In this document: positions 27,301 through 51,200 of the stretch, piece by piece | Position numbering within the stretch: the stretch's first letter is position 1 | How the letters are laid out: every line of letters starts with the position of its first letter | Assembly: GCA_965202585.1 (NCBI GenBank) | Contig: CBDBBG010000332.1 | Location: forward strand, 1-62,624 | Length of the DNA: 62,624 nt | Direction: 5' to 3' | DNA from: Thalia democratica | Lineage: Eukaryota | Program-made: the position numbers and the translations under genes | Notes under the pieces: generated by a model | The model's input: only the letters and a program-made list of their open reading frames with translations | The model's database searches: none | What the model was told of the DNA's origin: nothing

Positions 27301-30300
27301 TAAAAATATACTTTAACTTATTATAAACAATGCTTATACATTTTTTGTTTAAAATCTAGTAATTTTTTTGCGGTTATTGCTATAGGGCATTATTTCCACT
27401 ATGGTTCAAAGCGTTAAGCCAAATCTTTCATACTTTTTATAATTGTTTAAGTATAAACATATTTAAGCTCTAACTACTTAGTCTCTAGTCATCTTAACTG
27501 AAATTAAGAAAAGGATTAAGGTTGTATTTGTTCTGAGTTTATTACAATATTGTAAGGGGAGAAACCGTTTTACTAATATTTTTTCAATATCTTTTTACTT
27601 AAATAAAAATAAAAGTGTTATAAATATGGTATTAGTCTTTGAAAAATCCATAAACTTGTGTTTTAAATTTTGAATGTTTATCTCGTAAAGATAGTTCATT
27701 GTTTAAAATGTTTTGCTAAACTTTGTTCAAGTTATATTATTTACCGGTAAAAAGTTTGCTTAGAGTCTGATTCAGTATCAGATTTAAAATTTTCAGCTGT
27801 ATATTGAGGTTGTATTATAGTTTCGTAACATAAAAGTATAACAACTTGTTAATTTAATTTGTGTTAAGCTACTTAAATTTTTGTTCTTAATATCCATCGT
27901 AAACGATTGTGGTAGTTTGAATTTTTAAAAGGTAGTTCAATTATTTATGGTCAGTTTCAGATGCTGCAATTGTAAGATAGTTTTATTTTATGATGTTAAA
28001 CTTACTCATTGAAAAATTTAGAGTTTTAAATACATTTTAGTTGTTTATGATAAACTTATTGAGTGATTATTCATGGAAAACTTAACAACAAAATAAATTT
28101 ATCTAACTCTTTTTTATGCATCACCTGGTTTTGCTTATGTAATTGGATTAGCTTTTAAAGCTCAATTTTTAAGTATTTTATTTATTATGAGAAATACGAT
28201 ATTGGCTTACTCAAAGACTAATGGGCCTACTAAACTTAAAATAAATAATTTTCACTGAAAAGTTAAAACCTATTGGTTGTAGTCTTGTACAAATTATAAT
28301 TGTCAAACTTGATTTTAGCCATGCATTGTAACTTAAAAAGTTAGGTTTTGTTTAAATTTATACTTATTTATACTTATTTATTTAAAGAACAAGACAGTTT
28401 GTTTTTACACCAGGTGAGCATTTTATTTGCTTCTTAGATGAAAGCCAACATAATATTGAGATTGTTAGTCTTAGTCAGCAGTTTATAATATCTTTCAAAC
28501 AATTTTAACATTCAAACAGTTTTCCATAAGCCTAAGAACAAAGGTCTTTAAAAAAAGTGCTTACTTTTTTTAGCGGAACATTGCAAAAAACTTGATATTT
28601 CTTTTAACTAAGTATATAAACTAGATTTCAATATGTAGGTTTTTAATTTTTAACCTAAGAAAGCATTAAACGCTGACATCAGTTAGTTTGATTTTATCAA
28701 ACTAATTTAAATTGAAAGTTTTTTTTTTCAGTTCCCTCACAGAGTGTGTGAGTTTAAGTATTAATCTAAAGTATAATTGAAATAATCATTTATAGGAACG
28801 ACTGTTTTTCTACCTATCTTAAAAACTATATTTTTGTATTAAATTTTATAGAATTGTATAATAAGTATTCTGAAGTTGCTGTAATTTACACTACTAGGTC
28901 TTATTTTTATAGGTACTTTTTTATTTGACTACTGCCTTAAGGCATAACTTCCATAATGGCTATAAACCAAATAGTTCTTACATTTGATAATTTTTCTGAG
29001 TAAAAAATATTTAAACTATAATTACTCTGCCCTCAAGGCATATTAATTGAATATAAAAAGTGAATCAAGGCCGTATTTAAACTTAGTTGAAAATAAGAAT
29101 GTTAGAAGAGCAAACTTTTTCCTTACAATTGCATTTTTTCCAATATTTTTTTACATTTTTCACTGAAATAAAAATGCAAGTATTTTTGACCAACTGCTTT
29201 TAGTTCTTTAATAAAACCATATACTTATGTTTTAATATTTTATGTTTTTCTCGTTAGGAGATTTGATGGTTTATAAATTTTTCTAATTATGTTCAAATTA
29301 AAAGGTTTCCGGTGAAATATTTGTTTACAAAGTGTGATTCAGATCAGCTGCTTGTTTGTATTAAAGTATTGTCACATAAAAGTATTGTTCCTTTAAAATT
29401 GAATTTGTGTTAAACTATTTCATTGTTTATATTATGTATAAACTTGATATGTTCAACATTTTGAAAGTAATTCAATTACTTACAATTACTTTCAGATGAT
29501 GCAATTGTAAACTAGTTTTATTTTATGATATGTAAATATATGTGAAATTTACCTATCAAACAATTTAGGGTCTTAAATACATTTAAGTTGTATATAATAG
29601 ATTTGTAAAGTAATGTTTTATTAAGTTATATGCATCGTCTAAACTAAAAACAATTAACTGAATTACCTTTTAAGTTTATTTATCAAAGTCTATATTTATT
29701 CTAAAAAAGAGCTTTAAAGGTACTACAAGACTACAGATCCTTTTCGATTAAAAAGTCGCTCTTTTGGTAAAGTCTTGTAGAAACTATCAGTTATTAGATA
29801 ATAATTAAGTCAAGCATAATGAATTGAATTATGGGGTTATATTTTGTATTTGATAGTTGTGTATCAAAATGTTGTTTAACTTAACATAAATATTTTAACC
29901 GTAATCACCAATAACTATGTTATATCAGATTATAATTGTGTTACTAAACATGTTGCTATTTAATTAGTAAACTAATTGGTGTGCTAAATAGTTTAGATTA
30001 TTTTTATTATTTTTACTGGTTTTAAATACATTTTTTAGAGCATTTAAAGTTATAAATATTGATACTTAATTATTACTTTATCATTTCAAAAATAACTAGT
30101 TAGGACAAGTAAAAAAAAACTTTAAACCCAAAAGTGTGTGTTGTTATTGAAATATGAGAAAAAGTTCTTTATAAGTGCTTACAAAGATGATTTGTAAAGT
30201 TTTGTTGTTGAAATATGAGAGAAAGTTTTTAAAAACTAGTTCTTACTAAGCTAATTTGTTGATTATATATAAATTCAAAACCTTTGATTGCAATAAAAGC

Positions 30301-32368
30301 ACTTTAAGTGTTTTAAGTGTTACATCTAGATACCTTTTAATAAGTTTGTATTTCTAGATAAATGAAATGCTGACATAAACACATGATTGATAAGTGATGA
30401 TAATGTTTTTTTTAAATTTAATGGTCAATATACTATATATATTTAAAATAATAAATAATACATATATGTTTTAAATATATAAATGCACTTCGTATGTGAA
30501 CATTAAAGCTTTTTCATTAGTGCTACCCTTTTACCTTGAGTTTTATTTATACTATGACACCTAAGTTGTTATCAATCTTCATGTATTATTTTATATAACA
30601 ATGTCAACTTCTTTCTTACTACTAATATTGTTTTTTCTTTAATTATTGTTTCATTATCATTTGGGTTACTTAGGGGTTTAAGGCTATTTCAGGAGCTGTG
30701 GTCAATGAGTCTTAATTAAAACTACTTTATACTGAATTTACATTAAAAAGGCTTTCTTTCTTGACATGCTGTTTTTATTTAGATTTATATTATGGCTTTA
30801 TAAATAGTTAATAAAGTATAAATAAGAAATTCTAGATTAAGATGTTTTCTTTACAAAGTCATTGTTTTGTTTTTGTTTTAATTTTGTATAAAAACTGCAT
30901 GTTTTTTAATGTTGCTAGGCTAAGAAAAAGTCAGAATTAAAAAAACATCTTCTTTTGATTATTGCACTTTTTTGATTAACTTATACATTTGCCAGTTCTG
31001 TAGAATATTAATAAAAAGTAAAGAAAATATGCTTTTTTTATAAGTAAGATAGAACATTTGTGCTTCTGTTTGAGTTGTTTATGATTTTGCACTGTTGTTT
31101 ACGTGAGACCAGCTTTATATTACTGTTCAACTTCTCAAAAGACGCGAGCATAAAAGTTGTTAGTTAACTAGAATATTCATAACAATAAACTTGGCTTTTT
31201 TTTTTTTTTTAATATTTTTAAAAACTTTCAAACTTCTAAAAAATATGTAAGCGTAAAAAAAATTTCTTTAAAATTCTTATTTCCTTAAAACTTTTAAATG
31301 AAATTTAATTTTCAGCCTTAACAATATACTTTGAAGTTATTTTAAAAATGGTTATACATTTTTTTGTTTAAAATCTAGTTATTTTTCAGCGGTTCTTGCT
31401 ATAGGGCATTACTTCCACTATGGCTCGAAGTGTTTTGCCAAAGATTTCATATTTTTTATTATCGTTTAAGTATAAACATTTTTAAGCTCTAACTACTTAG
31501 TCTCCAGTCATCTTAACTGAAGATAAGAAAAGAGAAAAGGTTGTATTTCTACTCAGTATATTACAATATTGCAAGGGAAGAAAACTTTTTTCTAATAAAT
31601 TTTTTTTCCAATATTTTTTTACTTAATAAAAATGAAAGTGTTATAAAAATAGTATTAGTCTTTGAATAACCATAAACTTGTGTTTTAAATTTTAAATGTT
31701 TTTTTTCTTAAGTAAATTTCATTGTTTAAAATGTTTGGCTAAATTATGTTCAAGGTGTATTATTTACCGGTGAAAAGTTAGTTATAAAGTGTGATTCAGT
31801 ATCAGATTTTAAATTTTCAGCTGTTTGGTTGTACAAAAGTATAACAACTTGTTAATTCAATTTGTGTTAAGCTACTTATTTTTTGTTCTTCATATCCATC
31901 GTATGTGATTGTAATAATTTGAACTTTTTAAAGGTAGTTCAATTATTTATGGTCAGTTTCAGATGCTGCAATTGTAAGATAGTTTTATTTTATGATGTTA
32001 AACTTACCCATTGAACAATTTAGAGTTTTAAATACATTTAGCTGTTTATGATAAACTCATTAAGTGATTATTCATGGAATACTAAACAACAAAATAACAT
32101 TATCTAACTCTTTTTTATGCATCATCTGGTTTTAAGCTTATACAATTGGATTATCTTTTAAAGCTCAAATTTTTAAGTATTTTATTTATTATGAGAAATA
32201 CGATTTTGAATTACTAAAATACTAATAGGCCTACTAACTTAAAATAAACCATTTTCACTGAAAACCTATTGGTTGCAGTGATGTCTTGTAAAAATTATCA
32301 GTTGTCAAACTGGATTTTAGCCATGCATTGTAACTTAAAAAGTTAGGTTTTGTTTAAATTAATACTTA
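24368..32368 (+). repeat. Two ~4-kb tandem copies (24368-28367, 28385-32368), built from older diverged ~2.45-kb subunits
   Basis: GAACAAG(T/A)CAGTTT...TACACCAGGTGAGC at 24370 and 28387. TTTCAGATG(A/C)TGCAATTGTAA at ~25500, 27955, 29490 and 31957. Confidence 0.9.
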
Positions 32369-34021
32369 TGTATCAAAATGTAGTTTAAGTTAATTGTTAT
32401 TTAATATCATTTTGTACCCTAGTTGACAATAACTATGTTGTATCAAAAGTATTATTAACTAACTAAATATCTGGTTATCATACTAGTAAATCAAGTATCA
32501 TACTACCTTATACATTATAGTTTATATTATGTTTTTTTAGTAGAGGTTTAAATATATTTTAAAAGTTTCAAAACTGCAAATATTTCTGCTTAGTTATAAA
32601 TATAACACTCCATAAAGTAATTAAGGCAAGTAAAAAGACTTTAAACACAAAAATTTGAGTTGTTTTGTATTATATAAACTACTTCTCAGTAGATAATGCT
32701 TACAAAGCATTTATTCATTAAAGTTATTCATTCAATATTCATTTAATATTCATTCAATTTTCATTCAATATTCATTAGTATTGCATTAAAAAAAGTTTTT
32801 AAGTTTTTCAAGTTTTATTTAAGAGATTGTTTTATTAGCTTTTATTTATAAATAAATGAATGATGCAGTAGTAAAATTAATAAACTCTGAGTCTTTTCTT
32901 AAACGCCTATGATGTTAATAATATTTTAATATTTAATATTTAATTATTTTATTGTAAATATAATTTTAAAATATTAACAAAATGGTTCTTTTTAAATAAA
33001 TTAAATGCATTTTATATACGTTTATCAATACTTGGTCTTTAGTACTTTTGCTTACCTTGAGTTTGGTATAATTTAAACACCTAAATTATTATACTTTTGT
33101 ATGTTTTTATACAACAATTTCAATTTCATAGTTGCAATAATGTTTACTTTATTTAGATTATTTTTGTTTTTGGGACATTTTGGGCTTACGGCTGTTTTGG
33201 GAGCTGTGTTCAATGAGTTTAATTTTAAACCATTTTGTACTAAATTTAGGTAGAAAAAGCTTTCTTTTTGACGTACTATTTTACTGAAATGCATATATTT
33301 GCTTTATAAATAATTAACAAAGTCTAACTTACATACTATAAACTTTGTGGTTTTGTTTACGAATTCTTTTTTTTTATTTTTTGTTTGTATTTTTTGCAGA
33401 ACTATCATAGTTTTTAAATGTATTTTAAAAGTTAAATAGGTAAAAAAAATATTCAGAATTTAAAAGCTCGTGTTTTTAATGATTACACTTGTATAAGTTT
33501 TAGTTTTATACTTTTGCCAGTTGTTCAAAACTTTTAATAAAAAAGATTCTTCAACTAAAGTGAAAAGAATGCGTTTGTTATATTCGTCTAGTACATTTAG
33601 TATTGATTTTTCAAATATATTTTTATAAGAATTTTTTTTTTTAACGTCAAAAAAGATACGTAAATAAATGTGTTTTTTTTTTAGAAAAAATTTCCATGAT
33701 TAATCTTAACAAGATCATTACTTATATTTTGTGAAAATCTCTTTTTATACCTTCGACTTCCAATAAGAAAATTGATATGAGCGTAAATAGAAATATTCAA
33801 TTATCATGTGCTAAAAAATGCTTAGATAAAATTTACTTTTCAGTTTTTACAAAGTAAAAAGTATTCATCTACTATATTTGTACATTTTTTGAAGTTTTAT
33901 AAATGCGATTTTTTTAATAAGCATTTTTACGTTTTGCTTTACAGGAAGGACTTTAAAAAAATTGTGATCTAACACATTTCTTGTAACAGAACTTTAGTTA
34001 ACCAAACATTTACAGAGAGTT

Positions 34022-37000
34022 ATGTCAGGTTACAACAATTCAGGAAATTGTAGGTCACGAGGTAAAAAAAGGTCAAGATCACCAAGTCGTACGAGATTTA
34101 GGTCATCGAGTTATAAAAGATCTAAATTACCAATTAGAAGTTTCGATCATGGGTCGAATCTGTATAAAAGTAAGGCACGGCAGTTTGGGGATATGTTAGT
34201 TTTTCTAATTTTTATTTTACACTGGGTTTTAGTTCATATCTTGCTATAATATAACTTTATTGATAAAAGTTATTAAATTCAAAGTATAAAACCTGTGCAA
34301 AGACTTTTTAAAAACTTCTCAACTATCATTTCATCACATTTTAATTATAACTTTTCTTAACATTATTAATGACTAATACTACCGAGTACTTAATTAATAA
34401 ACCAAATGAATAATGGTCAAAACCTATTTTTCAAATATATTGCAAATGTAGTATAAAAAGTTGAAAAATATTTAGAATTCCAAATGCAAACAGAGGAATA
34501 AAGCCAAGCTACGACAAGAGATCAAAGAATCGTATGAGGTTTGTTTAAAAAATAAACAACTATTGCTACTTGTTAATTAGCTAAATTGTATGGATCTAAG
34601 TTTTTTAGTCCTTTAATGAATATAAAAGAAAGCTTAAAACTTCTACATATATTTTAACTAGACTTTTTGTAATGTTGTAAGTAGTATTCTGCTTTATTTT
34701 TGACAGTTTAATTTATTAAGAAAACATAGATAGTTACATTTATACCTTTGTGATCAGCAAATTATTAGAGGAAAATTAAATAGAGTCGTTCATAAGACAT
34801 AGCCTACAGCTGAGAGTTTAAAACTTTGTAAAACTGGGCATCTTTATTGAAAATATTTATTAAAATTGCCTCCTTAATAATAAGTTAAATAATAATATAA
34901 TTTTTCTTTTTATGAAGTAAAGAAACATAACTACCGTTTATTTTCGAAAAGAACAAAACATATTTGGAGATAGAATTACTTAAATATCAGAAAAAAACTT
35001 GAAACAAAACGAAACTATTCGCAGATCAAGTTCTTCTCGAAGCTATTCAAGAGGTCGCAAGTCAACTTACCAAACTAACTCAAGATCCAAGTACCGCAAA
35101 AAATCGAGATCAAGAAGCCGTAAGAGGTCGAGAAGCCGTAGTAGATCGAGATCGAGAAACTATGGTAGATTGAGATCAGGAAAAAACAGTAGATCGGGAT
35201 CAAGAACTAGTAAAAGGTTGAAAAGACATAGTAGATCTAGATCAAGAAGCCATAGTAGTTCGAGATCAAGAAGAAACGGTAGATCGAGGTCAAGAAGCTA
35301 TTGTAGGTTGAGTTTAAGAAACAATGATAGTTCGAGATCTAGAAGCTATAGTAGATCGAGATCAAGATTCAATAGTAGGTCGAGATCAAGAAGCAATGGT
35401 AGATCGAGATCAAGAAGCCATAGTAGTTCGAGATCAAGAAGCTATAGGAGATCGAGATCAAGAAGCTATGGTAGATCGAGATCAAGAAACAATAGGAGAT
35501 CGAGATCAAGAAGCTATAGTAGATCGAGATCAAGAAGCCATAATAGATCAAGATCAAGAAGCCATAGTAGTTCGAGATCAAGAAGCAATAGGAGATCGAG
35601 ATCAAGAAGCCATAATAGATCGAGATCAAGAAACAATGGTAGATCAAGATCAAGAAGCTATAGTAGTTCGAGATCAAGAAGCCATAGTAGATCAAGATCA
35701 AGAAGCTATAGGAGATCGAGATCAAGAAGCCATAGTAGATCAAGATCAAGAAGCTATGGTAGATCGAGATCAAGAAGCTATAGTATTTCGAGATCAAGAA
35801 GCTATGGTAGATCGAGATCAAGAAGCTATGGTAGATCGAGATCAAGAAGCTATGGTAGTGCAAAACGTAATAGATATTCGTGAGTTTTTTGTAGACTTTG
35901 CAATTGGAAAATGCACAACTAATAAATTTAACTACAATTAATTTAGTTAACTTGATAATGTTTTATTAGCATATCTAAGTTTTAGGAATTTTTTAAGTAT
36001 TATTTATTTTTTATTCTTGTTTTAGATTATTACAAAAATTTTAGTAATTTTAATTTTATTCTAATGTAGAGTAAATTTTCCCTTGCAAAATAACAAGTAT
36101 CATGTTTAAGAGACTAATTTTAGGTAGCCATTTTAATAAACTTTTTATTTAGAAACAAAGCTAAGTAAAACAGTTTTAAAACGAATACAACGTAACAAAA
36201 ACTTTATATTTTCTTTGTTAAAAAAAGATTATAGTAATCAAATAAAACAATTCACAGAAAATACTATCCTAAAATTTACTCAAGAGATCGCAAGCCAATA
36301 AAACGTACCAGCTCAAGATCAAGGAAACACAACAGGTCAAAATCAAAAATCTGCAATAGGTACAGATGTCACAGTAGTTCAAGAAACGATGGAAACTCGT
36401 AAGTGCTTTGGTTTTACAAGGTGTCTTTAAAAAATCTTTTAAGGTTTTTGATAACTTTATATTCAAGTTTTAATATATTCAATGTTTCTTAAAGCAACAT
36501 AAAAGGCGAAAATAAGTATAAAATGATAAAATATTGTTTCTAGTTTTCAAGATTCTTTAGTTTAGACATTACTTTGAATGTTTTTTTTCAATATACACTT
36601 GTTATTTTTTTTAAATAACAAAAACGATTTATTAACATGAACGAGTCTAATCATAACCTTTACATATATTGTACAGCACACAAGTTACAGGTCAGTTTCT
36701 TAAATTTAATTCCCAAAGGCGATTAACGGGAAGAACAAATTATTACAATTAGTCAGAGGAGTAGTTTTAATCAATGACGTAGTTGAATATGTTTTATAAA
36801 ACACTTAAAAATAACGTTTAAAAAAATTGTCAACAAAATAAAATTTGTCTTTAATTTCAGATCTCGAGCAGAATTAAGTAGAATTACCCAATATTTTCCT
36901 ATAATCCCTCCACCTGCATTGAATGGTTTGTTTAAGAGTTTGACTATTTTAACTAACCTATTCAAACTATTAATTGTTTTCAATTGTTTTTTACCGCTAA

Positions 37001-38524
37001 TTTAAAAACCGACGTGTAAAAAAATAAATTAAAATACCAGTTCTTGTCGTATATGTCAATATTTGAAATCTTAAACAGTTTTTTTTAACCAGTTGTTAAA
37101 ATTATACTTAAACAAACCTCATTACCAAATAAAATCAATGAAAGTGTTTTAAAAACTTATAAGTTAACGTTTTTTAATTAAAAACATTGTTTTTACTTAA
37201 AAAAAATTATTTGTTACAAAACTTAAAAACACATTAATTTATTTTAAAGCACATTCTAATATATTTGACATTAAATATACAGATTTGTTTCAGTACAACA
37301 TTTTTGTCTCTAATATATATATATTTATCTATAAACGAAATTTATTTCCTTTATTTTAAAAATTTTTCGTTTGCAGTTAACCTCAGAACGATAAGAGAAA
37401 ATGATAACGGCAGGTAAGACTAAATTTTCATTTACTAAAAATTATTTTATATTTCAATTATATTCTACTAATTTTAGCAAATTTTATTATAAATAAACAA
37501 TTGAACTATATAAGCCATTAATAAAGCTTTGTTGTAACTGATATTCAAACAATATTCTCAGTGGAAGTTGTCTGAAACAAATTAGTAACTATGCGCTGAG
37601 TAAACGGCAAATTAGCATCAAAATGGTGAACCAACTTGAAATGCTTCAAAATGTTAGAGATATTATAAAAAAAAAATACGAGTACAGCATTCCTGATGAG
37701 CACGTTGAACTGCAGGATTCTGATGGAAGTCAATACAGAATCATCTTCTTAACCCTGCCAACTAAAGAACAGGTTTATTTTAAATTATTATAAGACCGGA
37801 ATGTTAGGGCACATACATTAAAAAGAGGAAGACATGAAAAAAAGTAGGCTAAACTACTCTTTAGTTTAAAAAACTTAATAGTAACAGATTTTAAGCAAAA
37901 AAAAATTTTTATAGTTATAAAACTTAATATTTTTCCTGTTTACAATTGTCATCTAAATGATCGTACTTTAAAAAAAACTATAAAAACTTTCATAGAATAC
38001 TTTATGTTTTACATATTTTTCTCCTTAAATCAAGCTATTACGTACAGTTATTAATACTAAAGTACGAGCAATTAAATTACAACAGGTTGTCAAAATTCTC
38101 CAAGACAGAAACGAGAAACACTTCAAGAGCTTCCGAGCCGACAAAACGGGTTGGATAATCGATCTTCCCAACTCCAGCTTCGTAAATGACCGGGTCGCTT
38201 CGGTGGCAGAAATTCTCGACAGCGTCACGTACGAAAACAAGTCCTGTCTGCTGTACCTGAAGAAGGGTCATTACAACATGAGCCACTACCAAATGAAGAA
38301 GGCTTTGGAAGAGAGGTTTGAAGATCCTTTTCAAAAGTACTTCGAACGTCTGAACTTTTTATTTAAAACTTCAAAGTTGTTGTATGAGGTTCCAGGAAGG
38401 CGTGAGTGGGTGAAAATTAGGTTCAAGTTTGTAAAAGTGACCTTTAAGTCGGCTGAATATGCGAAAGTTTTTCATAAGCTACCTAGACTTGAGACATTTG
38501 AAATTGCGGGACCTATAGGAATGT
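34022..38524 (+). CDS. RS-repeat protein with two putative divergent RRM-like domains, paralog A (3' end lost in the assembly gap); exons 34022-34194, 34476-34538, 35025-35879, 36258-36398, 36861-36925, 37377-37413, 37562-37772, 38086-38524+
   Basis: All exons join in frame and the same splice sites exist in paralog B. The apparent stop at 35881 is in fact the donor TC|GTGAGT. RRM-like beta3-helix segments are YRIIFLTLPTKEQVVKIL and FKFVKVTFKSAEYAKVF; this assignment is by eye. Confidence 0.8.
35110..35862 (+). repeat. Coding 24-bp tandem repeat (AGATCGAGATCAAGAAGCTATGGT-type; RSRSRSYG octapeptide)
   Basis: Many degenerate 24-bp units. A shorter array is present in paralog B (~40780-41222). 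Confidence 0.95.
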
Positions 38525-38624
38525 NNNNNNNNNNNNNNNNNNNNNNNNNNNNNNNNNNNNNNNNNNNNNNNNNNNNNNNNNNNNNNNNNNNNNNNNNNNN
38601 NNNNNNNNNNNNNNNNNNNNNNNN
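38525..38624. other. Assembly gap (100 N)
   Basis: N run at the junction between tandem paralog A and the upstream region of paralog B. Confidence 1.
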
Positions 38625-39708
38625 CTCTGAGTCCTTTCTAAAACGACCATGATGTTTTTACTGGTATATTTTAAGATATTAACAAAATGGTAGTTTATAA
38701 ATAAATTATAAGAATTTTATTATGTTTTTCAACAGTTGTTATTTTATAATTTTGCTTAACATTAGGTTTAATAAAATAAAAAAAATTAATTATTTTATTT
38801 TTCTATGTTTTTATACAACAACTTCAATTTCATAGTTGCATTAATGTTTACTTTATTTTGATTACTTTTATTTCAATAACATTTGGGACATTTTGGGCTT
38901 ACAGCTAATTTTGGAACTGTGGTCAATGAGTTTTAGTTACACAATTTTGTACTAAATTTGAGTAAAAAAGGCTTTTTTTTGACACTCTTTTTTACTCAAA
39001 TGCATTATTTGCTTCATAAATAACAAACAAAGTCTAACTTACGAATTATAAATAGATGATTACAAAGTTTTTTTTGTATTTTTTGTAGAAACTACTAATT
39101 TGACAAGGTTTAATAGGTAAATAAAAAGTCATACCTATAAAGCACGTATTTTTGATGACTACACTTGTATGAGTTTAAGTTTTATACTTTTACCAGTTGT
39201 TCAAAACTTTAATTTAAAAAAAATTTTCAATTAAAATAAAAAGATTACGTTTGTTATTTTTGTTTAGTATTTTTAATTTAGACTTTCCAAAAATATTTTA
39301 ATAAGAAAAACATTGTTTTTAACCTCAAAAAAGATACGTAAATAAAAGAGTTTTCTTATTAGAAAAATTATTCATGATGAATCTTAACAGTCATTAATTT
39401 TGTTTATATTTTATGAAAATCTCTTTTTATACCTTCAACTTCTAATAAGAAAATTGATATAAGCGTAAATAGAAAGGTCTATTCAATTATCATATTCTAA
39501 ATAATGCTTAGATAAAATTTACTTTTCAGTTTTTACAAACTAAAAAGTATTCATCTATTATACTAGTATATTTTTTGAAGTTTTATAAATGCGATTTTTT
39601 GATTCAAGCACTTTTGCGTTTTGCTTTACAGGAAGGACTTTAAAAAAATTGTGAGCTAAAATACTTTTTGCAACAGAACTTTAGGTAACCAAACATTTAC
39701 AGAAAGTT

Positions 39709-42700
39709 ATGTCAGGTTACAACAATTCAAGAAATCGTAGGTCACGAGGTAATAAAAGGTCAAGACCACAAAGTCGTACGAGATTTAGGTCACCGAGTTA
39801 TAAAAGATCTAAATTACTTATTAGAAGTGTCGATCATGGGTCAAATCTGTATAAAAGTAAAGCACGGCAATTCGGAGATATGTTAGTTTTTCTAATTTTT
39901 TATTTTACACTGGGTTTTAGTTCATATCTTGCTATAATATAATTTTATTGATACAAGTTATTAAATTCAAAGTAAAAAACTGTCAAAGACTTTTAAAAGA
40001 CTCCTTAACTATCATATTATCACTTTTTAATTATAACTTTTATTAACATTATTAATGACTAATACTACCGAGTACTTAATTAATAAACCAAATGAATAAT
40101 GTTCAAAACCTAATTTTCAAATACATTGCAAATGTAGTATAAAAAGTTAAAAAATATCTAGAATTCCAAATGCAAACAGAGGAATAAAGCCAAGCTACGA
40201 CAAGAGATCAAAGAATCGTATGAGGTTTGTTTAAAAAATAAACAACTATTGCTACTTGTTAATTAGCTAAATTGTATGGATCTAAGTTTTTTAGTACTTT
40301 AATGAAAATAAAAGAAAGCTTAAAGCTTCTACATATAGTTTAACTAGACTTTTTGTAATGTTGTAAGTAGTATTCTGCTTAATTTTAGACAGTTTAATTC
40401 ATTAAGAACACATAGATAGTTTCATTTATACCTTTGTGATAAGCAAATTATTAGAAGAAAATTAAAATAAAGTCGTTCATAAGACATAGCCTACAGCTGA
40501 GAGTTCAAAACTTTGTAAAACTGGGTATCTTTAGTGAAAATAATTATTAAAATTGCCTCCTTAATAATAATATAATTTTTCATTTTATGAAGTAAAGAAA
40601 CATAACTACCGTTTAATTTCAAAAAGAGCAAAACATATTTTGAGATAGAATTACTTAAATATCGGGAAAAAAACTTCAAACAAAACAAAACTATTCACAG
40701 ATCAAATTCTTCTCAAAGCAGTTCAAGGGGTCGCAAGTCAAAATACCGAACTAACTCAAGACCCGAGTACCGCAGAAAATCGAGATCAAGAAGCCGTAAG
40801 AGGTCGAGAAGCCATAGTAGATCGAGATCGAGAAACTATGGTAGATTGAGATCAAGAAAAAACAGTAGATCGGGATCAAGAATCAGTAAGAGGTCGAACA
40901 GACAAAGTAGATCTAGATCAAGAAACAATAGGAGATCGAGATCAAGAAGCCATAGTAGGTCAAGATCAAGAAGCTATGGTAGATCGAGATCAAGAAGCTA
41001 TAGTATTTTGAGATCAAGAAGCTATGGTAGATCGAGATCAAGAAGCTATGGTAGATCGAGATCAAGAAGCTATGGTAGATCAAGATCAAGAAGAAACGGT
41101 AGATCGAGGTCAAGAAGCTATAGTAGTTCGAGATCAAGAAGCTATGGTAGATCGAGATCAAGAAGCTATGGTAGATCGAGATCAAGAAGCTATAGTATTT
41201 CGAGATCAAGAAGCTATGGTAGTGCAAAACGTAATAGATATTCGTAAGTTTTTTGGCTTTACAAAGTTTTTGTTTTTATTATATCATGTTTAAAATATAA
41301 CTGGCATGTAAATTGCAATATATTATTAATTGTTTTATATTATTAAGAAATAACTAGTGGTTTTATTTTTATTCTAATGTAAAGTTATTTTTCCTAGCAA
41401 AATAACAAGTATCATGTTTAAGACACCAATGTTAGGTGGCCATTTTAATAAACCTTTTATTTAGAAACAAAGCTAAGTAAAACAGTTTTAAAACGAATAC
41501 AACGTAAACAAAACTCAATATTTTCTTTGTTGTCAAACTATAATAGTAGTCAAACAAAACCATTTACAGAACATACTCTCCTAAAATCTACTCAAGAGAT
41601 CGCAAGCCAATAAAACGTACCAGCTCAAGATCAAGGAAACACAACAGGTCAAAATCAAGAAGCTGCAGTAGGTACAGCTGTCACAGCACTTCAAGATTAA
41701 GAAACACTGGAATTTCGTAAGTGCTTTGGTTTTACAAGTTGTTTTTATATATTTTTTTTTAAGGTTTTTGATAACTTTATATTTTAGTTTTAATATATTC
41801 AATATTTCTTAAAACCACATAAAAGGCGAAAATAAGTTTTAACTAGTAGAATATTATTTTTAGTTTTCAAGATTATTTAGTTTAGACGTTACTTTGTATG
41901 TAATTTTTTTCAATATACACTTGATATTTTTTTGAAATAATAAAAACTATTTATTAACATGAACGAGTCTTATCATAAACTTTAGATATATTGTACAGCA
42001 CACAAGTTACAGGTCAGTTTCTTAAATTTAATTCCCAAAGGCAATTAACGGGGAGAACAAATTGTCACAATTAGTCAGAGGAATAGTTTTATTCAATGAC
42101 GTAGTTAAATTGTTCTGTAAAGCACTTAAAAATAACGTTTAAAATAAGTTTCAATAAAATAAAATTTGTCTTTAATTTCAGATCTCGAGCAATATTAAGT
42201 AGAATTGCTGAACACTTTCCTATTAACCCTCAACCTGCAGTGAATGGTTTGTTTAAACAATTTGACTATTTTAACTAACCTATTCAAACTATTAATTATT
42301 TTCAATTGTTTTTTACCGCTAATTTAAAAACCGACGTGTAAAAAAATTAATTAAAAAACCAGTTCTTGTCGTATGTGTCAATATTTGAAATCTTAAACAG
42401 TTTTTTTTATGCAGTTGTTAAAATTATACTTAAAAAAACCTCATTACCAAATAAAATCAATGAAAGTGTTTTAAAAACTTATAAGTTAATGTTTTTTAAT
42501 TAAAATTATTGTTTTTACTTAAAAAAAATTATTTGTTACAAAACTTAAAAACACATTAATTTATTTTAAAGCGCATTCTAATATATTTGACATTGAATAT
42601 ATAGACTTGTTTCAGTACAACATTTTTATATCTAATATATATATATATATATAAACGAAATTTATTTCCTTTATTTTAAAAATTTTTCGTTTGCAGTTAA

Positions 42701-43847
42701 CCTCAGAACGACAAGAGAAAATGAAAACGGCAGGTAAGACTAAATTTTCATTTTCTAAAAATTATTGTATATCTTAATTCTATTCTACTAATTTTAGCAA
42801 AATTTCATAATAAATAAACTATCGAACTATATAAGCCATTAATAATGCTTTGTTGTAACTGATATTAAAACAACATTCTCAGTGGAAGTAATCTGAAACA
42901 AATTAGTGACTACGCGCTGAGTAAACGGCAAATTAGCATCAAAATGGTGAACCAATTGGAAATGCTTCAAAATGTTAGAGATATTATAAAACATAAATAC
43001 GAGCACAGCATTCCTGATGAGCACGTTGAACTGCAGGATTCTAATGGAAGTCAATACAGAATCATCTTCTTAACCCTGCCAACTAAAGAACAGGTTTATT
43101 TTAAATTGTTTTAAGACCGGAATGTTAGGGCACATACATTAAAAAGAGGAAGACATGAAAAAAAGTAGGCTAAACTGCTCTTTAGTTTAAAAACTTAATA
43201 GTAACAGATTTTAAGCATACAAAAATATTTCATAACTATAAGATTTAATACATTATCTGTTTACAATTGTCATCTAAAAGATCGTACCTTAAAAACAAAC
43301 TATAAAAAGTTTCATAGAATACTTTATGTTTTACATACTTTCTTCTTAAATCAAGCTATTAAGTACTAAAGTACAAGCAATTAAATTACAACAGGTTGTC
43401 AAAATTCTCCAAGACAGAAACGAGAAACATTTCAAGAGTTTCCGAGCCGACAACACGGGTTGGATAATCGATCTTCCCAACTCCAGCTTCGTAAACAAGC
43501 AGGTGGCCTCGGTGGCAGAAATTCTCGACAGCGTCACGTACGAAGACAAATCCTGTCTGTTGTACCTGAGGAAGGGTCATTACAACATCAGCCGCTACCA
43601 GATGAAGAAGGCTTTGGAAGAGAGGTTTAGAGATCCTTTTCGAAAGTACTTTGAACGTCTGAACATTTTAATGAAAACTTCAAAGTTGTTGTATGAGGTT
43701 CCAGGAATGCGTGAGCGGGTGAAAATTAAGTTCATATTTGTAAAAGTGACCTTTAAGTCGGCTGAATATGCGAAAGTTTTTCATAAGCTACCCAGACTGC
43801 AGACATTTGAAGTTGCTGGACCTATAGGAATGTGCATTAAAGATTAA
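39709..43847 (+). CDS. RS-repeat protein with two putative RRM-like domains, paralog B (563 aa); exons 39709-39881, 40162-40224, 40701-41243, 41570-41716, 42182-42246, 42697-42733, 42883-43093, 43395-43847
   Basis: 1692-nt open spliced frame with GT-AG sites conserved with paralog A; ends GPIGMCIKD*. Confidence 0.85.
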
Positions 43848-44914: not shown

Positions 44915-47900
44915 CAGGGTTTCCCAAACTCATTTTCTAAATCGCCCCCTTTTCAGAAACTTGAAAAATAATCGCCCCCACGATTTTTCAAAATAGTTTT
45001 TCTATTGAGTACAAACTTTTGAGCCGAAAAAATTGTGTTCGAAATGTAATTTAGTCTGGTACTCCTTAAGCACGCACTTTTGGGCTGTGTTCAAAATAGT
45101 TTACAGGGGTTGAGAAAATAAGTAACATTCGCTTTCCTAAAGCCCAAAAAAGGGTATAAAATACTTAATTATTACAAAGCCTTTTATAATCTGTAATCAA
45201 TTCTGTTTAGATATGAATTGTTTTAAATCTAATGAAACTTTTAGGGTAGTGGTGGACAAATTTTGTAGTCAGCAATTCATATTTACAAAATAGTCTTTTC
45301 TAGTTTCAACTCGTTAAAAAAATGTGATTGCGGGCTGCATAATTTAAATACACAACATATATGACAATTAAAAAAACTCGAGCAAAATTGTAATAGAATG
45401 ATTTAGTAATATTGTGATCTAGGAAATACTATTGTGAACTGTAAACCAAATTTAAAGTGTATTACAAAAAAATAAGTATCAAAAAGCTAAATTTTATTTA
45501 TTTTGCATAAGTAGTTTTCAAGTTACTTAGCGGGTCGAAATTTGACTGGATCGTAACCGTACGTTACCCATCTGAAATCTTAACTTAAACCTGACAATAT
45601 AATAATCTCTCATATAACGAATTTCGGACATTTAGAAGTTATTATTTAAGCCGCAAAAAATACTTTAGTTATTTTATAAAAAGCGTATTCTTAAATTACT
45701 ATACCAGAGATTAAAAAACTATAAAAATTGAAGAGTTTATTTTACACATAATATAATACATATTGTAACATAATTTCTGATCTAGTTTGAGAAAGTTTGA
45801 CCGACTGGTTAATTATCTCAAATGAAAAGTGGTTTCATCAAAAGGTTCAGTTAATGCAGTAAAATTATTAATTTCAATGCTAAGATATATTATAAGCAAG
45901 TTAGTTGTAAGGTTAAAAACTTAATTTTAAACTTTTTAAACTATATGTTTTGTAATAGAATACCATTAAATAGTATTTGACTTGGAATAACCTATAGGAA
46001 ACTAAACCTTAATATTAACATTTTTTTTTCTAAATTTAAATTTAAAAAAAATCAAAAGTTTTACAGTTAATTCTGTGAACAGAAAGTAATCGATTATAAA
46101 ATTCTTTTAATTAGGTCAAAATTTTGTTCTGTAACTGAAGCAGTCTTTTTTATGGCTTTTGTAATACTGTTTAAATTTATTTATTTTCCAGTTATTAGCC
46201 TATAATAATTTACCAGAAGAAAATAGTGAAAAACTAAAAGCTAGTGTTGAACTATTAAAATAAACAACATATTCTAATTGCTAATATATTAGAAATTAAG
46301 ATTAAACAAAAACAGTTGTATTAATAGTTTTAAACTCCTTAACACATAGTTTTTTTAACAATAATAAATCAAGTTAGAAAATAAAATTGAGTTTAAGAAT
46401 CTTTTAAATGAAAAATTTGGAGTCATTTCAAATAGAGACCTCAAATCTATACTCTTTTAAAACCAAAAAAAAAAAATTTGAAATAAAAACTTTAATAGTT
46501 ATCAAGATTTTTTTATTTATACAGATTAAATAAGTAATAACAAAATTATCTCAAATAAATTTCTTCCAAACAATACTTTAATCACTATGCTATAAAAACT
46601 TTTAGTGTAGTGTAAAACGACAAATATAAACTACAAAATTAACCAGGTCAAAATAAAACTATTAACAGATTTAAAACATAAACCATTCAATAAATACAGT
46701 AGACCTCCGCTTGAGTTCGCACTTTGAACAAAATCAAAAAATGCAAACTCAAAAATGTTTATCTTTTTTTTTCAAAATGATAAATTTAAATATGTTATAT
46801 GCAATAACGTTATGAATAATAATGAAATCAACTAAAACTTAAAACAAACATTCATTAAAAAAATAGGTCTATACAAGCTATTTAATATTATGAATTTTTT
46901 GTTTTATTAATACTTAATTAGTAATAGACTTTATTTAAGTTAAATTTTAGAAAATTAAAATTTGCACTTTTTTCGGGTAAAAAGTGCGAACTCAAGAGGA
47001 AGTCTACCGTAATTAATATTTATTGGGCATTATGCAAACCTGTTTTAGAATAAATAACTTAATAAAAAAACTTTTATAAAAAACTACTTAAATACAATAC
47101 AAACCAGGTTAAATAAAAAGTATTTTGAAAGATCAAATAGAATTAAAAAACTTTCATAAAATAATGTCTGCTACTGGAGTCTAATATAATGTGAAGGATG
47201 AGGTTCATGACTGCTTGCAAGTTTTTCTAATCTGATTCTTAATCAGTAAAATAAAGCCTCCTTTATAAATATCTAGATTAGATCTTTTGCTCAAGATGTT
47301 GATAACTGAACTGAAAGCTTTCTCAACAACATAGCTAGAAGGAAAAATTATAAACAACAATGTAAATTCCTCTCAAATGATTGGATACTTTTTCCTTAGT
47401 TTTTGTTGATTCCAAAAGCATTCATATCGTTCTTTGGAAAAAATTACTTTACGTTCAAGGTCAGTTTGTAAGTCTAAGACGGTTTCCTAAAGTCGTTTAC
47501 TTCAAAAAGATCTACGTCGAAGGGATAAATATTTTTATCTATATGATAGCTTTTTTGTGTCAAATCGAAATTTTACTACTTAATATGTTGAAATCGTTAA
47601 ATTCCAGAATTTTAAAGTTTTTTTTTGCCTAAATTGACAAATTCCAGGTTTTTCAAGGTTTTTAAGTATATTGGCAACCCTGTATAGTTTTATTTCTTAG
47701 TCTAACTTAGTGACTTTTCAAAAAACAATTGGAAATATCATGAGGTGATTTAACTATCATCTCATGATATTTCAAATAAAAATAAAAGTATACATGGTTG
47801 CCAGTTAACCTAGAAATCTAATAACATATAACATATGTAAGGTAATTTAAACTCTTTTATGATCCCAAATAACATATATGTCAGGTTAGAAAATGGTGAG

Positions 47901-48244
47901 AGGGATTCTGATTGTCTATCATCTATGTAATTGTTAAATAAGAAAATATATGAATGAAAATATGTAATTTACTTGAAAGTAGGAGTCATAAGTACTTGAT
48001 TTTTTTCTTTATATTTTACATAAACAAAATAAACTTTTTTAGTTTAAGTTTTATCTCAGGGTCAAATATTTTGTAGCAAGCTAAAATTAGTAAAATAGCT
48101 TTATAAAATTTAAAAATTTTATGACAGCCCAAAACTTTAAAATCGCCCCCTTTTCGCCCCCTTACTAGTTATCGCCCACCCTTTCGCCTCCCCTACTAAT
48201 TATCGCCCCCGACTTACTAAAATCGCCCACTTTGGGAAACCCTG
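44915..48244 (-). mobile_element. Degenerate hAT (Charlie/Buster-like) DNA transposon
   Basis: 14-bp TIRs CAGGGTTTCCCAAA (44915-44928, 48231-48244). ATCGCCC subterminal repeats at both ends. Minus-strand remnant at ~47175-47480, KEKYPII*EEFTLLFIIFPSSYVVEKAFSSVINILSKRSNLDI, resembles the hAT C-terminal dimerisation region. No clean 8-bp TSD. Confidence 0.8.
46697..47009. mobile_element. Tc1/mariner-pogo-type MITE (313 bp) nested in the hAT element
   Basis: TIRs CAGTAGACCTCCGCTTGAGTTCGCACTTT / AAAGTGCGAACTCAAGAGGAAGTCTACCG, flanked by TA on both sides. Confidence 0.8.
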
Positions 48245-51200
48245 CTCTAGCACTGAAAGTACGAAGCAGACTGTTTTAAGTAGCAAAGAATTCTAAAATG
48301 CTTCATTCAAATGCTAAAAAATAATACTTTATGGTCATCAAATACGTTTTTTCTAAGATTTTTTGGTTTAAGCGTCATATTGGATACTGCAATAAAATAA
48401 TGTTGATCATTATTTAGTATATTTAACTCAATATTATACACTTCGATCCAAACTTTTTGCAGGTAAAATAAAGTTTTGAGCTTAGTAGTTCAACGGATTT
48501 TAACTTATTCTGCGTCAAATTTTGATTGGACATTACATACAAACAAAACCTGAAGCCTGCAAAAAAAAAGTGCATATATTTTTTATTGTTTATTGAATTT
48601 CTAAAACGAACAACCGACATTTAAAGCAAACTTACTAATTATCAGTATTTTAGATTGTTATAATTTAGCTCAGATAATATATATTTTTTTTGAGCAGAAG
48701 CATACTGTTTGTAAATCCAACAGTGTTACAATTCCGTACGAAAAATACTCGAGCGAAACTGGTTCAAAAGAAACAAACGTAAGTTAAGTGTTCAACTGTC
48801 ATATAAGTGTTAGCATTTTGACAACCTTGGTTTAAAGTAGAGTTATCAGAATTCAAGTACAGTGTAAATCAAGCGGTTTCGTATACTATAGTTTCTTTTA
48901 CACTTAAATTTTCCAGCGTCTTGTTTTGACTAACTGAGTTGAGAAATAATAAAATAGTTAGAAACATTGCTATCTATTTATATTATTCGTCTATGCTTAA
49001 TTATAAAATATATAAAAGAAAATGACGAATTGAGTTAATTTAAATTTGAACGGCTAGTTAGAAACAATAGTGTATACATATATATATATATTTATACTAT
49101 TGTCTCTCCTTAGTGGAAACATATTTAAACGAAAATGACGGAACGATTTGATTTAAACTTGATTGGCTTACAATATATTTGTTCAAGTTGTGTAGTGTGT
49201 TAGTTTGAGTTTGGTTAGGGATAAGGTTATAAATAAAAAAAGCTTCGAAAGTTTTAATGACTCAGCTTTTGTTCATTAATTTTCAGCTCAGACTGACTTA
49301 TAAGTATACAAAAACTTTAAGGTTATGATCAACATAATACATTATTTAGATAAAGCTTGTTTGTTATCTATTACAAAAATAGTTTATTAGTAATTTAAAG
49401 TCTAAAATAGACTTTAGTTAATCTTTATTGATAACACTGCAAGTAAAGAATTAGTTTCTATAGAGAAAAGCAAGAAGATTTAAATAAACCAACTTTTTTT
49501 ACATCAATTTTAATCAACTAGAGTTGTCATTTATATGTCTAAATGTAAGCTGCCTTTTTTTTTGTTTAATTTAATGTAATAAAGCTCATAATATTTAATT
49601 ATATATTGTATGTTTACTTTTGCAAAAGCACTCATCAAATTCGTTCACACATTTTTTATTACAATTACTTCTTGTTCCACACCGTCAAGCAACTAGGTGT
49701 AAAATAAACTGTAGCTGAAATTAAATAAAAAACATTTCATTTACAATACTAGTTTATTCAAGGTTTTTAATAAAGCAATAGTACTTAAAAGCAAAACGTG
49801 ACTAGAATTGCTGTTTGATGCCACTTTTGTTGAGGCGTTTTTAACTAAATTAAAGTGTGGGCAGCATTGACTAATAAAACTTGTTTGCTGCCGAGTAGAG
49901 TTAGCTCAACTAGCTTGTTTTTATAAAATTTCTTAAGACGTGTTTTAGCAAAGCATAAATAAAAAGTTTTAATTAATATGAGAAACAGATATCAGATATC
50001 TTGTAATTTGTGATCGTGTTTGTCTTTTTTTTATCAAAAAAAGTGTTTACTTAAATTGTTCATATGAATTACAAAAACTAAAAGCTGTTTTATTTTCATC
50101 ATCAACTTGAGGCGAAAGATCATGAGTCTCGAAATTTTCCTATTAGGTTTTCAGGGTTCAGCATTTTAGACTATTTCTTATTTGTAAAAAATAGCAAGAA
50201 GTACTTTGAAATACTCAAAAGCCAAAAAAAACAATTTTCCTTAAATTTAAAAATGTTTAGTTTTCTTTGCTTTTACCTTTATATTTTGCCTTTCAAATTT
50301 TTAAAGAATTATTTTTGATTTTAGAAAATGATTATTATGTATATAGTTCTACTGCACAAGTAGAATTTAGTTAATTTTTTGATCTTGGTTTGCATTATTA
50401 GTCCTTTTGAACTTTCAAATTATATAAAACTATTTAAAAGTTTATGCTAAGTAGATTTGAATGACTACAAATAATAAAGATTTTTGTTCAGCTGTTTGAA
50501 AGGTTATCTTTTCTAATTGCTGAAGTTAGTTATAATTTTTAAAATTAAAGAAAATTCATACTTTTAGAATAATCTTCTTGAGTGCTTTACGTATCATTGC
50601 AACTTTTTAATTTTAGTTTTGAGAATTATTTTGAAGATAATAAAATAAAGACAAATTTTAGCATTTTACTTAATAAAAGTTAAATTAAGTGTTAGCTGTC
50701 TTTGTTGTTGTCTTATTTTGTAATAAAATTAATCATGTTTAGTTATTGTTATCGTTTTTTTTTGTGTAATAACACTAGTCATATTTAGTCATTGTTATCT
50801 AGCTGCTTTTATTTTCATTTGCTGCAAGTTATACACAGTTAAGTAACTACAACTAAATTTTAGCAAAAAAGTTTATTTTGAAGACTAGCTAATTCAAGTA
50901 AAAATACTAGTGAAATCTTATTCAACCTGCATTACATTTGTTAAGTTATTTTATTAAACTCTTTTTTTAATAACTTATTATGAACAGCTAATATCTTATA
51001 TCAAGAAACTGTTTTACAATTACAAAAGATTAGCACAGTATGGTAGGTATAGTAATTAGCTAGTGTCATTTTGAACTAACTATTTCAAATAACTTTAAAA
51101 AGAATCTTTGATTAATTTTGTATTTTGTTTTCTGGTTTGGGAACTGACACTTTTAGTACCTTGCTTTCTATCAGAAGTTGTTTAAGTTTAAGAAGAAGTT

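Follow-up and report, generated by a model that had tools for sequence, protein, structure and literature searches.

Gene structure of the two copies

The DNA analyzed here is a stretch of 62,624 nucleotides (nt) from Thalia democratica (contig CBDBBG010000332.1), referred to below as the window. It corresponds to an entire unplaced 62.6-kb scaffold (C341) of an 802-Mb animal genome assembly that is very AT-rich (~25% GC), and it carries two paralogous genes encoding proteins with a long arginine/serine-repeat (RS) domain followed by a nonrepetitive C-terminal tail. Both genes lie on the forward strand, copy 1 at positions 34022 to 38524 and copy 2 at positions 39709 to 43847, and they share an identical eight-exon layout (Table 1). 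All junctions are of the GT-AG type in each of the five copies of the gene present in the genome, and the exon phases join the ATG to the stop codon in a single frame, which in exons 3, 4, 5, 7, and 8 is the sole frame free of stops. The encoded protein has 552 residues in copy 2 and at least 650 in copy 1. The two eight-exon paralogs of the original prediction were thus recovered, each reading through GT-AG junctions in one continuous frame. So was the protein layout it described, a short basic N terminus, a very long RS exon, and a globular C terminus: the RS region comes first, and exons 7 and 8 make up a tail of 220 amino acids.

For the exon 1 donor and the exon 2 acceptor, two frame-compatible options were found, namely, CT/GTATAA with TTTAG/A and AAA/GTAAGG with ACAGAG/G (the slashes mark the splice sites). 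The second pair is favored because one of the three copies located on the chromosome-scale contig C4 has AT, not GT, at the first donor.

Table 1. Positions of the exons of both copies, of the assembly gap and the sequence following it, and of the copies on contig C4
Feature	Position	Strand	Description
Copy 1 exon 1	34022-34161 (alternative donor: to 34169)	+	ATG and short basic Arg/Ser-rich head
Copy 1 exon 2	34476-34538 (alternative acceptor: from 34496)	+	63 nt, identical in all five genomic copies
Copy 1 exon 3	35025-35879	+	RS domain, 284 whole codons; 24-bp minisatellite, 31 units, at 35124-35858
Copy 1 exon 4	36258-36398	+	Basic Ser/Arg/Lys-rich linker
Copy 1 exon 5	36861-36925	+	Conserved GT-AG sites, consistent frame
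Copy 1 exon 6	37377-37413	+	Conserved GT-AG sites, consistent frame
Copy 1 exon 7	37562-37772	+	First part of the nonrepetitive tail, 70 codons
Copy 1 exon 8	38086-38524	+	146 codons and 1 nt, then gap; holds the putative RRM-like unit
Assembly gap, 100 N	38525-38624		Last ~four codons, stop, and 3' flank of copy 1 missing
Copy 2 upstream region	38625-39708	+	1,084 bases after the gap
Copy 2 exon 1	39709-39848 (alternative donor: to 39856)	+	Conserved GT-AG sites, consistent frame
Copy 2 exon 2	40162-40224	+	Conserved GT-AG sites
Copy 2 exon 3	40701-41243	+	RS domain, 180 whole codons; 24-bp minisatellite, 18 units, at 40800-41222
Copy 2 exon 4	41570-41716	+	Conserved GT-AG sites, consistent frame
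Copy 2 exon 5	42182-42246	+	Conserved GT-AG sites, consistent frame
Copy 2 exon 6	42697-42733	+	Conserved GT-AG sites, consistent frame
Copy 2 exon 7	42883-43093	+	Both splice sites used in a spliced contig from a close relative
Copy 2 exon 8	43395-43847	+	150 codons and stop; predicted beta-alpha-beta-beta-alpha-beta unit at ~53-143, most conserved block at 109-133
C4 copy	81.06 Mb	+	Intact
C4 copy	81.28 Mb	+	Intact
C4 copy	81.38 Mb	-	Intact

The RS domain

Exon 3 is a 24-bp tandem array encoding RSRSRS followed by two variable residues, mostly YG, YS, or HS. Its product consists of ~34% Arg and ~37% Ser (~71% Arg plus Ser), with 82 to 145 RS/SR dipeptides per copy. The length of this exon varies among the five copies (543, 591, 639, 855, and 903 nt) by multiples of 24, so that the RS domain extends over 180 to 300 residues. 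Exons 1, 2, and 4 are likewise basic and rich in Ser and Arg.

According to the definition reportedly given by Manley and Krainer in 2010, an SR protein carries one or two RNA recognition motifs (RRMs) at its N terminus and an RS domain that is 50 or more residues long, has an RS content above 40%, and contains consecutive RS/SR dipeptides. The composition of exon 3 lies well within these limits. The domain order does not, since RS sequence occupies exons 1 to 4 and the RRM-like unit discussed below is found at the extreme C terminus, the reverse of an N-terminal RRM followed by a C-terminal RS domain.

One DNA contig, seen in two runs from one sample, links intron 2, at its end, with the beginning of intron 3 (window positions 40690 to 41263). 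In this contig, 20 other letters replace the whole RS exon, and its depth amounts to about one eighth of that seen locally. A copy or an allele without the RS exon in a related population may be its source.

Copies in the genome

For exon 7 as for exon 8, the assembly contains exactly five matching sites, two in the window and three on C4. The five copies are colinear through their introns at 88 to 97% identity, and no stop or frameshift was found in any of them. The flanks are also common to the copies for several kilobases up- and downstream, and the duplicated units are therefore segmental duplications of at least 20 kb.

Identity among the copies is mosaic. Copy 2 is identical to the 81.38-Mb copy through intron 2 and, single-base gaps aside, to the 81.06-Mb copy from intron 3 to exon 5, while the three C4 copies are near-identical to each other from intron 5 to intron 7. 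This pattern indicates that gene conversion has probably occurred or, alternatively, that the scaffold is in part an alternative haplotype of the C4 region.

Relatives and taxonomic range

Searching Pfam with every exon gave nothing above noise. A word-index protein search with exon 8 returned three fragments, and the same search with one of the relatives, the spliced fragment P0003, returned P0003 only. One further fragment (P0004, 40% identity) came from an exhaustive search of 1.84 billion representatives with an HMMER profile. All four fragments originate from marine samples of Tara Oceans, as would suit an animal of the plankton. Exon-by-exon searches for two genes bearing on tunicate identity, cellulose synthase (PF03552) and GH6 (PF01341), gave no match, the GH6 control being blank as well. 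No relative was found in a scan of the JGI metagenomes. At the DNA level, exons 6, 7, and 8, interrupted by introns at identical positions, are present on a scaffold from a Tara metagenome (L010), and a Tara contig (L001) carries a relative at 61% identity.

As far as public data show, the family is confined to this animal and its close relatives. The homology search called for by the original prediction revealed no one-to-one orthology with a known conserved gene. The bacterial 1,008-amino-acid repeat protein P0005, which reached an E value of 1e-4 through six repeated stretches, was rejected as a chance match inflated by repeats.

About 3 kb downstream of the gene carried by L001, reverse-transcriptase-like open reading frames were noticed (L001:3800-4160), so retroelements flank the relative's locus too.

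Selection on the coding sequence

Among the paralogs, exons are no better conserved than introns, and the ratio of nonsynonymous to synonymous substitution rates (dN/dS) is close to neutral, ~0.8 to 1.1, in exons 1, 4, 5, and 7. Much of the protein is hence weakly constrained, which speaks against a functional family. Such values would be expected if the copies were nonfunctional, either as young duplicates whose frames are still open through recency or as the product of a mis-built gene model, and the sole transcript evidence, an aberrant and chimeric contig described in the next section, could be read in the same way. We nevertheless regard nonfunctional copies as highly improbable because of the intactness of the genes, the constraint acting across lineages, and the splicing. 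All five copies are intact over 550 to 670 codons, RNA shows intron 7 to be spliced canonically, and the domain encoded by exon 8 stays open in three separate Tara lineages.

The constraint is found in exon 8. Its dN/dS is 0.30 to 0.47 among the paralogs and 0.27 to 0.45 against the Tara relatives L001 and L009, at dS values of 0.56 to ~2; against the closest relative, L010 (dS of ~0.2), it is 0.65 to 0.88. Along the exon, residues 1 to 45 and 106 to 150 show values of 0.23 to 0.47 and residues 46 to 105 values of 0.40 to 1.26, and a block at about residues 109 to 133 hardly varies, not even in the most distant relative. These ratios point to moderate purifying selection on exon 8 and argue for a genuine coding gene, conserved in its core and fast evolving around it. 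The earlier description of the family as lineage restricted and fast evolving agrees with the recovery of four Tara fragments among 1.84 billion representatives and with a dN/dS of ~0.8 to 1.1 in exons 1, 4, 5, and 7 next to 0.3 to 0.5 in exon 8. What has been observed directly comprises the structure of the genes, their intactness and copy number, the selection on them, and their restricted distribution.

Transcript evidence

In a Logan contig from a close relative (L008, Tara run ERR1719489), the joint between exons 7 and 8 falls precisely on the predicted GT-AG sites. At the RNA level, this contig proves removal of intron 7 and use of the exon 7 acceptor in the close relative. It begins with a 578-nt exon (positions 1 to 580) that is joined exactly to the exon 7 acceptor, out of frame. 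The homologue of this first exon in the T. democratica genome (C7:6790368-6790940, matching L044:1369-1942) ends with a canonical donor, CAA/GTAAGA, and is multicopy, with at least 13 copies on C7, C1, C401, and C879. It looks like a repeat- or transposable element-derived exon spliced onto the relative's gene, or like a trans-spliced or chimeric RNA. Farther downstream, comparison of L008:865-870 with L010:962-1397 shows that the contig leaves exon 8 after 75 nt and continues in the 3' flank of the gene; four letters at the joint are unmatched, and a GT donor is lacking. Because of this noncanonical jump, L008 is either an aberrant transcript or a chimera that the assembly made from transcripts of different paralogs.

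The three public runs found for the species itself are DNA: their contigs cover the introns evenly, and the joints listed in them have sides of 20 to 23 nt or fall in repeats. The proposed junctions are therefore backed by RNA of a close relative at the exon 7 acceptor and at the exon 7/exon 8 joint, and none of them by the species' own RNA, which also counts against the coding interpretation.

Fold of the C-terminal tail

The RRM fold is a four-stranded antiparallel sheet combined with two helices in the order beta1-alpha1-beta2-beta3-alpha2-beta4, and the RNP2 and RNP1 motifs of RRMs have aromatic residues at the RNA-stacking positions RNP2-2, RNP1-3, and RNP1-5. The original prediction had proposed two units of this kind in the tail, both without canonical RNP1 and RNP2. 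We modeled exon 8 on a shallow alignment of seven sequences (A1). The model is of low confidence, with a predicted local distance difference test (pLDDT) score of 57 and a predicted template modeling (pTM) score of 0.58. In this model, residues 1 to 42 are disordered and residues 53 to 143 adopt a beta-alpha-beta-beta-alpha-beta arrangement (pLDDT of 57).

In an exhaustive structural comparison with 48,161 chains, about 40 of the 50 best matches of the exon 8 model were RRMs or RRM-fold domains, with Z scores of 5.0 to 5.9. Among them were Prp24, RRM1 of U2AF65, DND1, TRMT2A, U1-70K, and the UHM of PUF60. RRM-containing clusters were also listed in an ESM Atlas shape search with exon 8, at template modeling (TM) scores of 0.38 to 0.51. 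At the profile level, we compared exon 8 by hhalign with an RRM profile for which 22 RRMs that Pfam detects in this genome were used. Residues 54 to 144 aligned to the whole RRM in the expected register (P of 0.03), a score reached by 3 of 150 column shuffles. This weakly supported register places Tyr at RNP2-2, Phe at RNP1-3, and Lys at RNP1-5; all three residues are invariant in the family, and two of the three are aromatic. With an invariant Tyr at RNP2-2 and Phe at RNP1-3 in this register, the phrase "without canonical RNP1/RNP2" appears too strong.

Several results weigh against an RRM-type tail. All structural evidence derives from one low-confidence model made from a shallow alignment, and Z scores of 5 to 6 lie below the structural aligner's own reliability level. 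A Foldseek search of the PDB with the exon 8 model gave nothing at an E value of ≤0.001, and PDB sequence searches, whether with a single sequence or with a profile, gave no true match. No Pfam RRM family was detected for exon 7 or exon 8 even at an E value of ≤10, and neither exon reaches the curated threshold of the PF00076 clan. The language-model neighbors in the ESM Atlas were LRR/FNIP clusters (~100 of 256 features shared, low recognition). Finally, the first of the two proposed units, formed by exon 7 and the start of exon 8, had no meaningful match, RRMs included, and no in-register profile match. Its model, built from the natural spliced fragment P0003, was unusable (pLDDT of 48.5 and pTM of 0.28).

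These results would also suit a new domain unrelated to the RRM, binding proteins or serving another purpose, in a protein acting elsewhere than in pre-mRNA splicing, for instance, as a scaffold of the nucleolus, of chromatin, or of condensates. The absence of a sequence-level link to RRMs, the blank Foldseek search, the low Z scores obtained with a weak model, the language-model neighbors other than RRMs, and the first half of the tail, which has no assignable fold, all favor such a domain, as do the unusually long beta2 and beta3 strands of the model. However, most of the best structural matches are RRM folds, rather than being scattered across other ferredoxin-like families, and the profile match is in register and brings conserved aromatic residues to RNP positions. 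We therefore consider a non-RRM tail with such a role doubtful, though the more serious of the competing explanations. The last ~95 residues of the tail most likely form a degenerate RRM-type (ferredoxin-like) domain, as judged from the model. Of the two RRM-like units, the second (exon 8, ~53 to 143) is thus retained through its beta-alpha-beta-beta-alpha-beta arrangement in a low-confidence model and its weak RRM matches, and the first is left with no usable model.

We also compared exon 8 with the UHM, a variant characterized by Arg-X-Phe in the alpha2-beta4 loop and by an acidic helix alpha1. In the family, this loop reads PRLQTF, PKWDEI, PVWKEF, or SKRWNEI, and helix 1 is mixed to basic, so the tail does not resemble a UHM in these features.

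A few candidates were discarded in the course of this analysis. The scores of the LRR/FNIP neighbors were at chance level, and PDB matches to HIV Env, OrfX2, and a GTPase were rejected as chance matches. An internal duplication relating domain 1 to domain 2 was not supported (hhalign P of 0.16), and MAFFT alignments that mixed exon 7 and exon 8 pieces were misaligned and were excluded.

Proposed role and comparison with known proteins

Since the family departs from the SR-protein definition both in its domain order and in the lack of a detectable RRM, we classify it as an SR-related orphan family. The chances seem about even that these genes form a real protein-coding family, young and confined to one lineage, in which an RS domain is combined with a degenerate RRM-type tail and which acts in RNA processing. 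The product would be a strongly basic protein of ~550 to 670 residues, consisting of an Arg/Ser head, the RS domain, a basic linker, and the 220-residue tail. By analogy with known RS proteins, the octad array would be phosphorylated by SRPK/CLK-type kinases, and the RS domain would mediate nuclear import, recruitment to speckle-like condensates, and contacts with other RS proteins; its regularly spaced Arg and Tyr residues might promote condensation. The conserved C-terminal module would provide specific RNA or protein binding and thereby a role in RNA processing.

In U2AF2, both its interactions and speckle-proximal splicing are controlled by the RS domain at the N terminus (PMC12956353), and N-terminal RS motifs are known in the speckle and spliceosomal proteins NKAP (PMC3950704) and SNRNP27 (PMC6140464). 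It is from the behavior of such RS domains (PMC12956353, PMC3950704, PMC6140464), together with the weak fold evidence, that we infer fold class, localization, and function.

U2AF65 (U2AF2), RBM39/CAPER-alpha, and PUF60 offer the closest match in layout, with an N-terminal RS region followed by RRM-type domains, and U2AF65 RRM1 and the PUF60 UHM rank among the top structural matches to exon 8. Those proteins, however, have three Pfam-detectable RRMs, eukaryote-wide conservation, and short RS regions, whereas the RS-repeat family has no sequence homology to them, an RS array of 180 to 300 residues, and none of the UHM hallmarks. Classical SR proteins (SRSF1 to SRSF12) share the long RS/SR dipeptide domain combined with an RRM-like module and, presumably, the SRPK/CLK partners. 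Unlike in these proteins, the order is reversed, with the RS domain first, the RRM is invisible to Pfam, there is no orthology, and the distribution is limited to one plankton lineage.

RNPS1 and Tra2 likewise have RS-rich regions upstream of a single RRM, and insect Transformer is an RS protein with fast, lineage-specific evolution. No sequence relationship was found to any of the three; Transformer has no RRM, and the RRMs of RNPS1 and Tra2 are canonical and widely conserved. The resemblance to the [G/S]Y[G/S] low-complexity regions of the FET family is one of composition only, Tyr occurring regularly beside Arg in the SYG or SYS that ends most octads. Arg-Tyr contacts drive the condensation of FET proteins. 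In the RS-repeat protein, by contrast, Tyr and Arg are interleaved within one repeat, and no homology is implied.

The protein might instead be a germline or sperm nuclear basic protein, its RS array serving as a phosphorylation-controlled, DNA-condensing polycation like the SRPK1-regulated protamines. Protamines and other sperm nuclear basic proteins are similarly highly basic, Arg/Ser rich, fast evolving, and plausible SRPK substrates, SRPK1 being a protamine kinase (PMC13327716). Such a function would fit the extreme basicity and RS content as well as the rapid evolution, the gene conversion, and the variation in copy number and repeat length, as seen in reproductive genes. We judge it unlikely, since Arg alternates strictly with Ser where protamines have Arg tracts, poly-Arg tracts being absent here. 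Moreover, unlike protamines, the protein is much larger and possesses a conserved, folded C-terminal region, the 220-amino-acid tail, which is under purifying selection.

In a more speculative and quite improbable scenario, the tail would represent an undescribed family of nucleic acid- or protein-binding domains, limited to a single pelagic lineage and joined to a hypervariable RS array with Arg/Tyr stickers, the number of repeats tuning the formation of condensates. The protein would then be a rapidly evolving regulator of reproduction, sex, or life stage, comparable to Transformer, that diversifies by segmental duplication and gene conversion.

Should the SR-related reading be correct, these genes would represent an orphan SR-related family of recent origin within a single group of marine planktonic animals. 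They would also provide a natural case of an RS domain whose length shifts fast through expansion and contraction of a minisatellite, attached to a highly diverged RRM-type module. Such genes would be useful for studying the birth of new RNA-processing regulators and the effects of RS length on condensates, and they may mark reproductive or life cycle-specific regulation in ecologically important and poorly studied animals. The general architecture is already familiar, and no surprise for the field is expected from it.

Assembly gap and surrounding sequence

Copy 1 lacks its 3' end in the assembly. The gap begins one base into codon 147 of its exon 8, and at the point of truncation the four other genomic copies have four further codons and a stop. 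The sequence to the right of the gap (38625 to 39708) matches the region upstream of the 81.38-Mb C4 copy at 100% identity and the corresponding regions of the remaining copies at 80 to 87%, and it has no match to the stretch just downstream of the copy 2 stop codon. It is therefore promoter-side sequence of copy 2 and not the end of copy 1, and the open reading frame listed through the Ns, across 38525 to 38624, is accordingly an artifact. The head-to-tail adjacency of copies 1 and 2 likewise depends on the scaffold join.

The scaffold contains further repeats. Positions 1 to 532 of the window are identical to positions 31969 to 32500, and upstream of copy 1, two versions of a 3.4-kb block are 86% identical (24995 to 28371 and 29000 to 32374). 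Each C4 copy also has this block on its upstream side. It is possible that the scaffold is a haplotig or was joined wrongly in part. Downstream of copy 2, a dispersed repeat of ~2.7 kb is inserted at positions 45500 to 48250; missing at the equivalent site of the C4 copies, it is present in more than 40 copies across the chromosomes, at 84 to 92% identity.

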